64,000 nt of DNA. Source: Salpingoeca rosetta (taxonomy: Eukaryota > Protista > Choanoflagellata). The position numbers and the translations under genes are program-made. Positions within the stretch are counted from its first letter, which is position 1. Each line of letters opens with the position of its first letter. The DNA lies in contig JAWQFM010000017.1 in NCBI GenBank assembly GCA_033442325.1, positions 853,947-917,946 of the forward strand, read 5' to 3'. The notes under the pieces were generated by a model that saw only the letters and a list, made by a program, of their open reading frames with translations, ran no database searches and was not told the origin of the DNA. Shown piece by piece: positions 25,023 to 37,764 of this stretch.

Positions 25023-28000
25023 CTAAGCCACCACATCGTCCTGCACTGAGCTGTAGATGGCATCAATGGAGACCCCGCCCACGTGCGCTGAATCGTGCGG
25101 GTCAAGCGGCATCGCGTATTCTGGCGGCGGCGGCAGTCCTGCTGCTGTCGCCCACGTGCGGTGGAGTTGGTCGTACGTATTGCCCGGGAAGGACTGGCTC
25201 GGTGCAGCGCTGCTATCTCGCTGCGACCGTGTGCTGCTAGAGCCGGGAGCAAGTGCGCGCTGGTGAGGACCAGACAGCACGCTGTACTCGGGCTGTTCGC
25301 TGGAGCGATCGAGGTGATCATAGGACGCTCCAACGTCGCTGGCAAATGGACGGGAGTGAGGACCAGACAGCACGCTGTACTCGGGCTGTTGCTGCTGTTG
25401 CTGCTGTTGATGGTGATGCGTACTGGCTGCTTGAATGTCAGCAATCATCGCTGCCTCGGTTGGCCTCATGCCGAGGTGGTGGTAGACGTGCTTCCCGCCA
25501 CGAGCACCGGTAGGCGCGCGCTGGTGTGGTCCCGACAGCACATCGTACTCTGCCTCATCACCAAACTCTTGTGAGCCACCCCAATGATGCTGCTGTTGCT
25601 GCTGTTGATGCTGCTGCTGCTGCTGCTGCTGGTGTGTCGTGCACGTGTCCAGCCGATCGTAGGTAGGTGCCACGAACGGCTGTTGCGGTTGGTGGTCTGT
25701 GCTGTTACCCATCATGACCGCATCCATGTTCTCGTACGCGTGAGATGGCGATACAGCACGGCCGCCACCACGATGATGGCGGGTGGTGCCATTTCCAACA
25801 CCAGTATCACCATGAGGTAACCACAGTGGCGCCCCACTCTCCCCAAACGCTTCGCTGTTGCTGTTGCTGTTGCTGTTGCTGCTGTCCGGGCGCCGGCCAC
25901 CGTGCAACAGCCCGGCTTCACCGGCACCACTAACGCCACTGTCGCCCCACGCGTCCCGCGGGTGGTGGCGTGCAGGCGCATTGCGATCGCTGGTACTGGC
26001 GCCCATGCTACTGTTGTTGTTGCTGTTGTTGCTGTTGGTGTTGGTGTTGCTGTTGTCAGTGGTGTGCCCGTTACGGCCCGTGTCGTTGAGCATGAAGGCA
26101 GGATTCACCACGGGGCCAATGCGGTCGCAGACAGCAGCGTCATCACCGTCGTACGGCGCCGCCACGTGTGCATCTGCTGCCTTCTTACCATCTGCGTGTG
26201 GGTTCCCTCCGCGCCGTCTCCGTCGTACTAACAACAGCATGACTGCAACCAGCAGTATGACACCGCCCACAGCGCCCGCCGCAACGCCAATCGTCGTGGT
26301 GGACGCAGCGGAGGTGGATGGCGAGACGGTTGTTGCACCGGGCATGACGGCGGCAAAGGAGGTCGTCGTGCTTGTGGATAACGAAGGTGGTAATCGCGAG
26401 GGTCGTGGTGGTCGTGGCGTGACAGTCGCAGTGGTAGCACTTGCAGTCACTGTCATGGTTGTTGTAGTTGTTGTTGTTGCGGATGATGAGGACGATAATG
26501 TTGTTGTTGTTGTTGTCATCGTCGTCGTCGTCGTGGCAGTGGTAGTCATCGTCACACTCGTGGTTGTTGTAGTTGTTGTTGTAGTTGTTGTTGTTGTAGT
26601 TGTTGTTGTAGTTGTTGTAGTTGTTGTTGTTGTAGTTGTTGTTGTAGTTGTTGTTGTTGTTGTTGTTGTTGTAGTTGTTGTAGTAGTTGTTGTTGTTGTT
26701 GTTGTAGTTGTAGTTGTAGTTGTTGTTGTTGTTGTTGTTGTTGTTGTTGTTGTTGTTGTTGTGATTTCAACGCAGTCGGTGCCGTCTCCGTTCTGTGACA
26801 CGTAGCCCTGCATACATGTGCACATGACGTGATCTTTGCTAATCGCTGTGCAGGTGGAATGTGCGCCACACCCGCCATTGTCTATCGTACAGGGGCTGGA
26901 CGGGCAAGTTTTCAGCTGCACGCAGTCGAAGGCATCCACATCTGAACACAGACACGAAGGCACGTGGCATGTGCACCAGCCATGAGCGAGCGGCAGAGGG
27001 AAAGACCATGCAAGGCGGGGTGGAGATGGAAAGGGTAGTCGCGTGCAGTGCTGACAGCGCAGACGAGAGAGAAAGGAAGAACGGGTGGGATTTAGGATGC
27101 ACGCGGGTACAGAGCTGTGCACGGGCAAACACACACACACACACACATACACAGGAATGCTCACAGAAGCACAAGCACACAGGCACAAACGCACACGCAC
27201 AGCACACACAACACACGTGTGCGAATCGACCATTGCTCACCTGTAGCAATGCAGTGGCAGCCATTGTTGCAAGGATTTGACAATGCTTCGCAAGGACTGG
27301 TGCTGGGGCACGATGGGCCTGAGCACTGAAAGTCGCCACTGTAGCACTGTGCATCCTCAAAAGCAGCACCATAGGCACAGTCGCACCTGTAATACACACA
27401 CGTGCAAAGGGCGCAGCAGCGCATAATGAAGTGTGTGTGCGTGCGTGTGTGTGTGCGTGTGTGTGTGTGTGTGTGTGTGTGTGTGTGTGTGTGTGTGTGT
27501 GTGTGTGTGTGTGTGTGTGTGTGTGTGTGTGTGTGTGTGTGTGTGTGTGTGTGTGTGTTAGAACTACGGTGGTTGAGGGCCTGTGTTGGTTATGCTCCTT
27601 GCTTCCTTGATTGCACAACCACAAACGCGCACACCAACATGCACCCACACTCACTCACTCACTCACTCACTCACTCACTCACTCACTCACTCACTCACTC
27701 ATTCACTCGCGCATGCACACGCTCGCACATGCAGAACGCAGCGTGAAACTCACAAGAAGTCCCGGTCGCCCTGGCACGTGCATGCGCCGCCGTTACAGGC
27801 GCTGCTGTTGCAGAGATTGACTGACATGATGAACAATGGCAGTGGCCGTGCAGTGCGGGTGAGACAAAACGACTCTCAAAAGGAGAAGGATTCGCGCGTT
27901 TGAGGACAGACGGACGGGACTGGGCACAAGCAAGGATTGAAGGCCCTAAATATAAGCTCAAAGTGATGGCATGAGGCTTGTTACTCACTTGGCGTGTATT

Positions 28001-29015
28001 CGACAGTGAAGGTGATTCGGGTTCTGCGACTTTGGGTGTGTGTAACAGCTGTCTCCTGCTGCGGGTCACAGCTTCGAGGAAAGTCCAGCCGCGTGTTATC
28101 GGCTCGGTATGTCTGTCGTAAGAGGCAAGGAAAAGCAAGCACAATACCAGTTGAGCACGTGTGTTGGCGTGCTGGCGTGGAGGATCGAGTTGGAATCCCA
28201 CTCCCCAACGGTGCACACACACACACACACATACACACACACACACACACACACACACACACACACACACACACACACACACACACACACACACACACAC
28301 ACGTGAAGTGGCTGGGCTTACCCCAAAATAAAGGACGTCGAGTTCCAGCTTCTCCTGTGCCAGGACAAATGGACAAGGCGGACACGGATGTGAGCAAGCG
28401 AGCACACACCTTCAAACATGATGACACTGATAATACACCGCACATGCGCTCACTTCAGCCTTTCAGCCTTCTCGGAAGCACAAATGTAGTCGCATGGCAT
28501 GGCACTTTGACACAGAAAACATGGGCGCCGCACGTTGCGTTCAAAGTCGTCTGCCACAAAGGATTGCCATAGCACACCCCACGTTCCAGGGTTTTGTTGT
28601 TCAGAAGGAAACTGGAGGGTTTCAGAGCGTCCCTGGATTTCGAACTCCAAGCGTGCGGTCCTCGCTTCGGCGAACTGCAAATTCAACGCGAGCCTGTGCT
28701 CGACCTTTTCCACCCGCAGGCTCACGCGTCCGCCTGGTAATTGGGGGGGGGGGGGCGCAAGGGAGGGCAAAGGAGGGGGAGGGGTTGCGACATGTGGCAT
28801 GGGAGATGAGGATGTGTGAGTTGAAACGCAGGTTGTGACAGACACAAAGCATACTCACACACACGCGCGCGCATACTCACACACGCACGCATACTCATAC
28901 ACACTCACACACACACACACACACACACACACACACTCACACACTCATGCACACCTTCGCAGAGACCGCTGAGCGAGACAAGGACACCCGTCAGCAGCAG
29001 CCACAGCAAGCGCAT
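25023..29015 (-). CDS. Receptor-like type I membrane protein, paralog A (signal peptide, unrecognised N-domain, Cys-rich + EGF, poly-Thr stalk, TM, multi-YxxL tail)
   Basis: [21 protein letters not shown] at 29015; [17 protein letters not shown]...CTCMQGY; [24 protein letters not shown] followed by RRRRR; tail motifs YENM, YDRL, YDVL, YHHL, YSVL, YDHL, YSVL, YDQL, YSSV. Confidence 0.85.
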
Positions 29016-36000: not shown

Positions 36001-37764
36001 ACACACACACACACACACGTATACACATGCGCACTACCTGTGGTGATGCAGTGGCAGGTGCTGCCGCACACGTTTCGGTTGCACGGGTTGCTGGTGGGGC
36101 TACTGCTGACGGAGGGACAACTGTCCTCAAACACCTCTCCCACGCAGTCACACCTATATACACACACACACACACACAAAACCACGCGCACACACAAAAC
36201 CACGCGCACACATGGTAACGTATCGTGAGTGAGCGTGGCAACCAGGCAACCAGGCAACCGCCACCAGTAGCAAACACGCATCACAGCACTACACAAGCAC
36301 ACAACAAGCACACACAGAATGAGTGCACAGCACAACATACCTGACTTCGCGATCGCTGATGCATGTGCACGTGCCAAAGTCCTTACAGGCGTTTGCATTA
36401 CAAAGGTTGGCTGCAGGGGAGGGGAGAAGGCATTTTGTTGTGTAAATTGGTGAATGGTGTCAGAGAGCAAAGTGGATTTGAGAACGTGCGAGTGTACTGC
36501 TGCGCAAATGTCAGTTCCGTCAACACCCATTGCAATGTTCACGTACTCGGGCGGAATCTCAGGCGGAAGTCGAAGTCGATCTGGGATGTAAAAACTGCGC
36601 CGTTGTATTCTGATTCGTACATTCTTGAGGCGTGCATGTCCTTCCGTTTGTTTTGGCAGCCATTTTGGAGATTGAACGACACTGTTTCCATCTCATACAC
36701 CTGTCACCCAATGCCATCCAATGCCGCGATACTTGTCGTGTGAGTGCAATCTTCACGTGGACGACAACCGTTCCATGCATGTATCATGGAAATCAAGCAA
36801 GCGTACAGACTGGATATGCGAGTGTTCCTCACTTGATCGGGGTTTGCGTCGTATGAGTAGGTCACAATGACTTGGCCCTGACAACGAAACGGGAAGAAAA
36901 AGAACACATGGGTGAGGACATGTGAGAAGAAGCTGCAACCCCACCTGGAATGTCGCATCCTGAACGCAGCTCACCAAACAGCGCAACACAGGACCATGCG
37001 CACCGTTGCATCAAAGTCGTCTGCAGAGAAGGAGCGCCACTGCTGGTTGTTCCAGACATCGCTGTTGGTGTTTTTCGAGGGGAACTGGACCTGTTCATTG
37101 TGGCCTATCACTTGCAACTGGATCCGCACCGTTGTCAGTGGGGAACTGTTGCCGACATAATTGGTGAAGATGACTTGATCCACCGAAATGCTGATCTCCC
37201 CGCCTGGAGCGTCGATAGACGTGTGTATGTATGTATGTATGTATGTATGTATGTATGTACGTATGGATGGATGGATGGATGGATGGATGGATGTATGTAT
37301 GTATGTATGTATGTATGTATGTATGTATGTATGTATGTATGTATGTATGTATGTATGTATGTATGTATGTATGTGTGTATGTGTGTGTGTATGTGTTTGT
37401 ATGATTGTGTGTATGTGTGTTTGTGCGTGTGCGTGTGAAATGGTGACACCAATGCATGTGAGTTGTTGCGGTGGCGATACAACCCTTGCAAGAAGACACG
37501 GTCAAGAACAACCTTGGAGAGGCAAAGACAGTCAATACAGACAGACAGACAAGAGACAGACCGACAGACACAGACACACACAGACAGACACACAGACACA
37601 CACAGACACACACAGACAGACAGACAGACACACACACACACACACACACACACACACACACACACACACACACACACACACACACACCACGCACCGTGGC
37701 ACGGGGTGAGGAGAAAAAGGAAGCAGCAGGCCACGAGGCCCACCACCACAGCAGACCGCTGCAT
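33043..37764 (-). CDS. Receptor-like type I membrane protein, paralog C
   Basis: [24 protein letters not shown] at 37764; [17 protein letters not shown]...CECVAGY; (ST)n stalk; [24 protein letters not shown] followed by RRRRRKR; tail with repeated YDRL/YDVL, YHHL, YSHL; ends ETSTSI. Confidence 0.85.
37226..37372 (+). repeat. (GTAT)n/(GGAT)n intronic microsatellite in paralog C
   Basis: Seen directly. Confidence 0.9.

Follow-up and report, generated by a model that had tools for sequence, protein, structure and literature searches.

Three adjacent paralogous genes of the choanoflagellate Salpingoeca rosetta encode putative kinase-less receptors with conserved tyrosine-motif tails

Three adjacent paralogous genes, here called A (minus strand), B (plus) and C (minus), lie at positions 25023-37764 of a 64,000-nucleotide window on contig 17 (JAWQFM010000017.1) of the 55.4-Mb Salpingoeca rosetta assembly, the stop codon of A falling at 25023 and the start of C at 37764. 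A three-way alignment showed the same order of parts in each product, namely a signal peptide, an N-terminal domain (hereafter N-domain), a cysteine-rich module, an EGF domain, a Ser/Thr stalk, a transmembrane helix, an Arg/Lys stop-transfer sequence and a long tail rich in tyrosine motifs. An earlier, preliminary description of the locus had proposed three genes in this orientation with one shared architecture, and both the arrangement and the individual elements (signal peptide, EGF repeat, Thr/Ser stalk, GxxxG-rich helix) were found in our models. Judging from these sequences, we put the chances at about even that the trio act as non-catalytic phosphotyrosine docking receptors, the phosphorylation itself being our inference. 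The locus is chiefly of value because it is well defined and deletable, which suits it to testing phosphotyrosine docking in a unicellular animal relative.

Gene structures were established with two stranded RNA-seq runs from 2026 and two contig sets, aligned over 27560-33559, a span that stops short of the Cys-rich and EGF junctions of A and of all junctions of C. All seven introns of B were recovered as GT..AG joints in stranded reads and contigs, and the first four introns of A (28734-28954, 28355-28533, 28113-28321 and 27821-27988) were backed by joints in the RNA or by contig pieces. For the two remaining junctions of A we relied on GT..AG sites, intron phase and resemblance to B, and the whole of C was modelled from homology, GT..AG sites and the phases seen in A and B. 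RNA support for the proposed models is thus complete for B and partial for A, and for C consists of minus-strand RNA over its 3' end (32960-33559). The start of C is uncertain, as another in-frame ATG lies further upstream. Read orientation agreed throughout with minus-strand A and C and plus-strand B. Intron phases were the same in the three genes (0, 1, 0, 0, 1, 2, 1, then 0), with a phase-1 intron cutting the signal-peptide region and A lacking only the intron between EGF and stalk. The matching exon boundaries described earlier therefore hold for the phase of shared introns, but the N-domain is spread over three exons, the Cys-rich module over two, and the EGF-stalk boundary differs in A.

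Gene B corresponds to the public record "hypothetical protein PTSG_06598 [Salpingoeca rosetta]" (GCA_000188695.1, scaffold GL832972.1), and gene C was identified as PTSG_06599 because of the scaffold gene order, its EGF annotation and the kinase PTSG_06601 further on. Public lengths for A, B and C are 870, 551 and 1044 amino acids (aa), against 849, 653 and 1071 aa here, with no Pfam hit on record. The 551-aa model of PTSG_06598 is correct through exon 4 and then continues in wrong frames; this mis-splicing costs it the Cys-rich module, the EGF, the stalk and half of the membrane helix, and domain-based surveys of the public proteome therefore undercount such receptors. Separately, abundant reads and contigs (depth to 868) matched only the 20-24 bases at 29249-29272 and 32080-32100 and then continued into unlike sequence, with A>C at 29265. 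These most likely derive from another highly expressed transcript that shares CAG/CAA-repeat strings, and are no evidence on gene B.

The tails are 400 (A), 253 (B) and 627 (C) aa long. Scanned against Pfam, those of A and B contained no kinase, phosphatase or other domain (nothing below E 0.3), and the unscanned C tail could be aligned to that of A; with no Pkinase or PK_Tyr match in A and B, these proteins stand apart from receptor tyrosine kinases. Tyrosine makes up 2.1-2.8% of tail residues and Leu plus Ile 5-6%, yet YxxL/I occurs at 7 of 11 (A), 3 of 6 (B) and 11 of 13 (C) tail tyrosines, values reached by 0, 43 and 0 of 20,000 shuffles, respectively. The earlier picture of a tail with many tyrosine motifs was borne out, as was that of no catalytic domain for the A and B tails scanned. 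In a six-frame scan of the window, the pattern Y-x-x-[LIV]-x-[GE]-P-H-x-R occurred seven times, always within three long open reading frames (ORFs; 25-26 kb minus, 32 kb plus and 33-34 kb minus), to which T/V/M-Y-[DNHS]-[RHQ]-L motifs were likewise confined. The seven copies define an 11-residue unit, E-Y-D/S-V-L-S/A-G/E-P-H-x-R, in which Y, L, P, H and R are invariant, and a profile of this unit matched trio genes only across the genome.

One tyrosine pair, YxxL-x8/9-YxxL-x-x-PH-x-R, is the only one common to all three tails, and adds to what the preliminary description had reported. It reads YDHL-x8-YSVL in A (residue 751), YNHL-x9-YEAL in B (residue 604) and YDRL-x8-YDVL in C (residue 956), which has a second pair with a spacer of ten (residue 1009). 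The A pair and the first C pair match the consensus of the immunoreceptor tyrosine-based activation motif (ITAM), YxxL/I-x(6-8)-YxxL/I, and the B pair and second C pair fall just outside it. Beyond this pair, 9 of 11 tyrosines in the A tail align to a tyrosine in C, compared with 36% identity at other residues (Fisher p 0.003), and the A and C tails have in common T-Y-D-R-L-D-x-C-T-T and V/T-Y-H-H-L-G-x-R-x-x-E-A-A-M-I-A-x-I-Q-A-A. All three keep a PLWLP motif and a juxtamembrane NPxF, the latter within P-V/I-V/L-N-P-x-F and 39-44 residues past the membrane. At their C-termini B and C carry S/T-x-I, by rule of thumb a putative PDZ class I ligand; together with the IYSSV near the end of A, these ends would resemble Cbp/PAG.

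Conservation differed by region. Pairwise identity was 26-30% in the N-domain, 35-61% in the Cys-rich module, 45-51% in the EGF and 50-56% in the transmembrane helix plus juxtamembrane region. These regional identities, with tyrosine conservation, were used in place of the ratio of nonsynonymous to synonymous substitution, synonymous sites being saturated at 26-50% protein identity. A strongly diverged ectodomain over conserved tail motifs had been proposed; the N-terminal end is indeed the most variable and the membrane, juxtamembrane and tyrosine elements are kept, but the change is graded rather than sharp. The idea of a variable end with a conserved output therefore holds as a gradient, since identity falls outward from the membrane.

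The N-domain (119-133 aa across the three) was not recognised by sequence, as previously noted: residues 27-147 of B gave no Pfam family at E 10, including C2 (PF00168) and MNNL (PF07657), and no PDB sequence match. Two Pfam leads from exon 2, Glyco_hydro_2_N (E 0.022) and HepII_C (E 0.046), were dropped; neither recurred in the scan of the whole N-domain. Cadherin and Ig-like leads from an ESM search with exon 2 alone lay below recognition level and were superseded by the search with residues 27-147. AlphaFold2, given an alignment of B with the two other exon-2 peptides, modelled residues 27-147 of B as an all-beta domain of eight long strands (predicted local distance difference test (pLDDT) 67.5, predicted template-modelling score 0.62), although only one of five models was that confident. 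Foldseek matched this model in the PDB almost exclusively to C2 domains (best E 2.5e-3, TM-score ~0.4), among them those of myoferlin, Munc13, cPLA2 and perforin and the N-terminal C2 of Delta-like, Jagged and Serrate. A VIA-align all-against-all scan returned nearly all C2 at Z 5-6.9; by the program's own caution, even unrelated models often give a best Z of 7-8. The ESM Atlas model for residues 27-147 of the public protein reached TM-scores of 0.64-0.67 to C2 clusters, and an ESM sequence-feature search with these residues ranked perforin-like C2 at 0.89 and MNNL at 0.84. On these models a C2-like sandwich is probable, with appreciable doubt. Although the two predictors and the three comparison methods point the same way, every score lies in the grey zone; the domain was not filed in the C2 family.

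The Cys-rich module contains three C-x-C pairs and its exon products, scanned singly, had no Pfam match. One EGF was found in each protein, that of B above the EGF_3 cut-off of 28.5 bits and those of A and C below it with the same cysteine pattern. The stalks of 158 (A), 114 (B) and 149 (C) aa are 77-91% Ser plus Thr, poly-Thr in A and (Ser-Thr)n in B and C, so that all three have the long Ser/Thr-rich extracellular stalk adjoining the membrane that characterises transmembrane mucins. Such a stalk is probably O-glycosylated and, by a rule-of-thumb estimate, would be roughly 30-40 nm long.

Under the docking interpretation, these would be type I membrane glycoproteins presenting a variable C2-like head, Cys-rich module and EGF on an O-glycosylated stalk. 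The head may bind a surface, lipid or glycan ligand, and the GxxxGxxGG helix would permit dimers or mixed oligomers. Clustering would then expose the YxxL sites of the tail to cytoplasmic or receptor tyrosine kinases, perhaps brought via the NPxF, which might recruit a PTB-domain protein. Phosphorylated YxxL sites could dock SH2 proteins singly or through tandem SH2 domains, for example in a phospholipase C (PLC)-gamma-type protein; the conserved double site would suit a tandem-SH2 reader, and the S/T-x-I ends of B and C may tether PDZ scaffolds. We counted in favour of docking that YxxL motifs are repeated up to 11 times and lie hundreds of residues past the membrane. Many motif copies at such distances are typical of scaffolds, not of sorting signals. 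The kinase and SH2 steps gain support from choanoflagellate precedents: in Monosiga brevicollis RTKB2, disordered RM2 tail repeats are phosphorylated and bind the SH2 domain of MbSrc1 (PMC3584944), and PTB-directed substrate targeting of a tyrosine kinase was shown for HMTK1 (PMC3082566).

Several observations weigh against docking. Every tail motif fits equally well as a YxxPhi (AP-2) or NPxF/Y (PTB/endocytic) sorting signal. The residue preceding the tail tyrosine is E, D or T, and Src-family kinases prefer I, V or L there. Most animal immunoreceptors have short ectodomains, in contrast to the long mucin stalk here, and of the shared tyrosines B retains just two. Among the long ORFs scanned, none next to the trio belonged to a tyrosine kinase or SH2 gene. 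Phosphorylation or SH2 binding of these tails was not reported in the literature searched, in which no S. rosetta phosphoproteome was found, and the peptide strings of the trio were absent from the supplements of the S. rosetta p38 paper. Published expression of B and C is also low, at <=12 fragments per kilobase per million (FPKM; PMC4054682).

Potential readers are plentiful in the genome, where at least 92 SH2 matches, tandem-SH2 proteins among them, upheld the large SH2 repertoire assumed at the outset. One gene (C7:1973000-1979500, minus) has the PLC-gamma-type order of PI-PLC-X, SH2-SH2-SH3, split PH and PI-PLC-Y, and is by its domains a candidate reader of double phosphotyrosine sites. 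In an ORF at C23:863500-870500 (minus; ORF 3785-6979), TNFR-type Cys-rich repeats (120.7 bits) and a TMEM154-like stretch occur together with two SH2 domains; its product is possibly a membrane receptor that carries its own tandem SH2. In another (C12:1072500-1079000, plus; ORF 2-2851), two SH2 domains accompany a bacterial-surface Ig-like domain (70.8 bits). At C6:335500-345499 (plus), five SH2 domains fall within ~4.5 kb, a single exon holding three of them, and the ORFs scanned there gave no kinase domain. Separately from these readers, an SH2 exon at C26:221672-224746 (minus; ORF 737-2392) is followed by an exon with about twenty acidic x-Y-G-D/E motifs. By its motif content this gene apparently encodes a further tyrosine-array scaffold, which has no sequence relationship to the trio. 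The trio would then be one private form of a theme that is probably not rare in this genome.

We assessed cell-type context from published data. The log2Fold(Attach/Colony) table of Fairclough 2013 lists PTSG_06598 and PTSG_06599 (PMC4054682). Gene C was 4.0 log2 higher in attached cells than in colonies (P 4e-12; second fold column 1.9, P 4.5e-4) and gene B 2.7 log2 higher (P 1.2e-6; second fold column 1.5, P 9e-3), with FPKM values, in column order, of 4.7, 5.4, 3.2, 1.5, 0, 1.2, 0.2 and 0 for C and 0.3, 12.4, 1.2, 2.0, 0.4, 1.9, 1.1 and 0.1 for B (PMC4054682). Sample codes there denote attached cells (At), swimmers (Sw), rosette colonies (Co) and chains (Ch). In the copies consulted, the captions of S10-S12 are offset by one, such that the file entitled "upregulated in colonial cells" has Attach/Colony columns, and the headers were trusted (PMC4054682). 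PTSG_06599 was also placed in the "upregulated in Attach" heat-map cluster (PMC4054682). B and C are thus preferentially expressed in thecate (substrate-attached) cells, and the rosette setting suggested earlier is disfavoured. The gene identifiers of the trio had no text mention in the literature searched.

A more specific version of the docking scheme would make the trio a convergent ITAM analogue outside animals, at work in thecate cells. Clustering of heads by a surface, lipid or bacterial ligand would lead to double phosphorylation of YxxL-x8/9-YxxL-PHxR, to be read by a tandem-SH2 protein, either PLC-gamma-type or one of the two-SH2 ORFs with extracellular-type domains. This chain of events is speculative and we regard it as unlikely. 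If it did operate, an immunoreceptor-style module with a private ectodomain would have arisen here by convergence.

The alternative that fares best takes the same motifs in their unphosphorylated form, as YxxPhi (YDRL, YDVL, YHHL) and NPxF signals read by AP-2 mu and PTB-type adaptors, in endocytic or phagocytic cargo receptors that carry prey, lipid or matrix inward. The fit to YxxPhi is high, at 9 of 11 (A), 5 of 6 (B) and 11 of 13 (C) tail tyrosines. The NPxF is kept in all three at 39-44 residues from the membrane, YDRL has arginine at the +2 position that mu2 favours, and a single-pass protein with an EGF-bearing ectodomain would suit a bacterivore. CED-1/Draper/MEGF10 and LDL-receptor-type proteins use NPxY and YxxL for uptake. 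However, 6-13 signal copies over 250-630 disordered residues are seldom needed for sorting, and the conserved stretch (S-G-P-H-x-R) runs on for five to nine residues beyond the tyrosine, outside what AP-2 recognises. Sorting appears to us improbable, although it does not exclude docking: the YxxL of Draper signals via phosphorylation too.

A second alternative, which we rate as rather improbable, sees signalling mucins or mechanosensors of the thecate cell, in which a rigid O-glycosylated stalk would hold the Cys-rich head to theca or substrate and the tail would mainly anchor cytoskeletal or PDZ scaffolds, much as in fungal Wsc/Mid and Msb2-type sensors or animal transmembrane mucins. The length and Ser/Thr content of the stalks, the Cys-rich head beside them, the S/T-x-I ends of B and C and the upregulation of these two genes in attached cells (PMC4054682) all suit it. 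It leaves the strict conservation of tyrosines and of ITAM-like spacing unexplained, and Pfam and protein-library searches gave no homology to Wsc, Msb2 or animal mucins. It is also compatible with a phosphotyrosine output rather than opposed to it, since MUC1-type tails are tyrosine-phosphorylated as well; docking, sorting and mucin-sensor readings overlap more than they exclude one another.

Very little speaks for highly diverged Delta/Serrate/Jagged-like ligands, where the head would be an MNNL-like C2, the Cys-rich module DSL-like and the tail end a PDZ ligand: the parts do come in the same order and the model does resemble these proteins (DLL4/DLL1 Foldseek E 0.02-0.03, Serrate Z 6.2, DLL1 Z 5.5, and the MNNL cluster in the ESM feature search), but generic cytosolic C2 domains match equally or better, Pfam MNNL and DSL gave no match even at E 10 in exon products (Cys-rich exons singly), the YYG/GWxG signature of DSL is absent, and the EGF is single. 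We hold this reading very low because MNNL plus DSL, the diagnostic pair for Delta-type ligands (Richter 2018), gave no match in the exon products. No intact Notch or Delta had been detected in S. rosetta, according to the same paper (Richter 2018).

The ancestry of the trio was addressed by homology searches. Single-sequence and profile searches of the genome with the A tail, the N-domain exon, the Cys-rich exon and the tyrosine motif returned only A, B and C; a weak N-domain profile match on contig C26 (E 0.14) was treated as spurious, as it lay in a nonsense frame of another gene. With the short exon-2 profile, HMMER found PTSG_06598 as the only real match among 1.84 billion representative proteins, in libraries whose content of choanoflagellate transcriptomes is uncertain. 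Further matches of this profile (P0002-P0004) were taken as noise, from repeat proteins matching 25-50 profile positions. With the B tail as query, a word-indexed search recovered PTSG_06598 alone, and no relative of the trio was recovered from the 1.84 billion representative proteins or from 5.8 billion clusters. A homologue search with the last exon of A found nothing but carries little weight, as poly-Q, poly-N/S and poly-T words swamped the candidates and even the public A and C models were missed. Profile searches for N-domain and tail-repeat relatives, of the kind suggested in the preliminary description, led back to the trio, with N-domain, Cys-rich module and tail motif confined to these genes in the genome, and its "pre-animal" ancestry found no support; by sequence, the family appears private to one species so far. 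Likewise, its tandem expansion amounts to three paralogues and not to a large expansion. The searches revealed no homology to animal immunoreceptor families, yielding neither a relative nor an Ig or lectin domain. Any immunoreceptor likeness is therefore analogy, and the finding has no bearing on animal immunoreceptor ancestry, because no homologue outside the species was found.

As a description of the tail, "immunoreceptor-like" is nevertheless fair. Like ITAM- and ITIM- (inhibitory motif) bearing immunoreceptors, LAT and Cbp/PAG, the trio are single-pass and enzyme-free with several YxxL/I in a disordered tail; the x8 pairs of A and C fit the ITAM consensus, and tandem paralogues with variable ectodomains and conserved signalling tails are an immunoreceptor trait. 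In non-catalytic tyrosine-phosphorylated receptors, the class of animal immunoreceptors, the defining step of signalling is that Src-family kinases phosphorylate tyrosines of the tail (PMC11399299). Unlike immunoreceptors, the trio lack an Ig or lectin ectodomain and sequence homology, bear a long mucin stalk and have been found in one non-animal species only. Their tails are also 5-10 times longer than those of ITAM chains, with spacers of 9-10 in B and the second C copy.

Nearer in phylogeny, the RM2 tail of RTKB2 belongs to a choanoflagellate receptor with a Cys-rich/EGF ectodomain and a disordered tail of lineage-specific repeated tyrosine motifs, which are kinase substrates and SH2 docking sites (PMC3584944). 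RTKB2, unlike the trio, has its own kinase domain, and its ~80-aa repeat with an EEVYEAI-type site has no sequence similarity to the 11-residue unit. CED-1/Draper/MEGF10 resemble the trio as EGF-bearing, single-pass proteins with NPxY-type and YxxL tail motifs, a plausible set for a phagotroph, and their YxxL motifs act as an ITAM-like signal; the trio, for which no homology to them was detected, have a single EGF and lack an EMI domain, carry NPxF in place of NPxY, and possess a mucin stalk as well as a C2-like head. The predicted eight-stranded sandwich is like the MNNL/C2 of Notch ligands and the C2 of perforin, and as in Delta/Jagged it would be N-terminal, before Cys-rich and EGF parts; it departs from known extracellular C2 domains in lacking a Pfam C2 or MNNL match, and the model is moderate (pLDDT 67.5, best Z 6.9, TM-score 0.64-0.67). 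Transmembrane mucins and Wsc/Mid sensors share the Cys-rich head, Ser/Thr stalk, single pass and signalling tail, whereas the trio have no WSC, SEA or HMH domain and a long tail rich in tyrosine motifs.

Choanoflagellates have very large repertoires of tyrosine kinases, phosphatases and SH2 proteins, yet hardly any endogenous substrate or docking platform has been identified; the RTKB2 receptor-kinase tail was the only dissected example in the literature searched. The trio form a compact 13-kb locus that could be deleted. Its kinase-less receptors, with their sharply defined 11-residue motif and ITAM-like pair, lend themselves to pull-downs with peptides and to Y-to-F genetics, and thecate cells provide the cell-type context for a phenotype.

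Table 1. Coordinates of the three genes, their domains and motifs, and neighbouring features (positions within the 64,000-nucleotide window)
Feature	Position	Strand	Description and basis
Gene A	25023-29015	-	Presumably PTSG_06597; 849 aa, 7 exons; first four introns RNA-supported, last two from homology, GT..AG sites and phase
Gene A exons	29015-28955, 28733-28534, 28354-28322, 28112-27989, 27820-27754, 27386-27241, 26941-25023	-
Gene B	29265-32286	+	PTSG_06598; 653 aa, 8 exons, spliced coding sequence 1962 bases; 7/7 introns as GT..AG joints in stranded RNA reads and contigs
Gene B exons	29265-29340, 29488-29663, 29801-29854, 30017-30155, 30305-30377, 30516-30625, 30775-30938, 31117-32286	+
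Gene C	33043-37764	-	PTSG_06599; 1071 aa, 8 exons; whole model from homology, GT..AG sites and phases as in A and B
Gene C exons	37764-37695, 37203-37004, 36877-36833, 36700-36547, 36410-36341, 36153-36038, 35856-35693, 35439-33043	-
N-domain, B	29488-30155	+	Residues 27-147, three exons; predicted C2-like beta sandwich
N-domain, A and C	27989-28733 (A), 36547-37203 (C)	-	Alignment
Cys-rich module, B	30305-30625	+	Two exons; conserved cysteine pattern
Cys-rich module, A and C	27241-27820 (A), 36038-36410 (C)	-	Alignment
EGF exon, B	30775-30938	+	Pfam EGF_3, 30.5 bits
EGF, A and C	26772-26906 (A), 35693-35856 (C)	-	EGF_3, 27.0 bits (A) and 24.7 bits (C)
Transmembrane helix	26226-26291 (A), 31459-31524 (B), 34927-34992 (C)	-, +, -	G-x-x-x-G-x-x-G-G; alignment
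Juxtamembrane NPxF	26094-26111 (A), 31615-31632 (B), 34837-34854 (C)	-, +, -	V-V-N-P-A-F in A; common to all three
PLWLP motif	25815-25829 (A), 31813-31827 (B), 34552-34566 (C)	-, +, -	Kept in all three
Further E-Y-D/S-V-L-S-G-P-H-x-R copies	25515-25550 (A), 25347-25382 (A), 33736-33771 (C)	-	Motif alignment
ITAM-like block	25254-25322 (A, x8), 32134-32205 (B, x9), 33325-33393 (C, x8), 33160-33234 (C, x10)	-, +, -, -
C-terminus, A	25026-25058	-	IYSSV eleven residues from end; ends V-V-A
C-terminus, B	32236-32283	+	VYNHL; ends S-S-S-I
C-terminus, C	33046-33087	-	VYSHL; ends T-S-I
A-B head-to-head region	28954-29264		Start codons 250 bases apart; 5' untranslated regions of A and B; divergent transcription; RNA contig pieces span 28954-29338
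Uridine kinase/UPRT fusion gene	38288-42282	-	Downstream neighbour of the trio
Large Ser/Thr-type protein kinase gene	43030-47601	-	Pkinase 192.7 bits; probably PTSG_06601

The neighbours of the trio are housekeeping genes (gamma-glutamyltranspeptidase, a GTPase, uridine kinase/UPRT, a Ser/Thr-type kinase and PP2C). The Ser/Thr-type kinase, a gene separate from the trio, was the sole kinase among the window ORFs scanned. Between A and B, the bin 28960-29159 held RNA reads in both orientations. G+C content of the window is 50-60%, and introns are (CA)n-rich, with one such repeat at 27457-27558 inside gene A.

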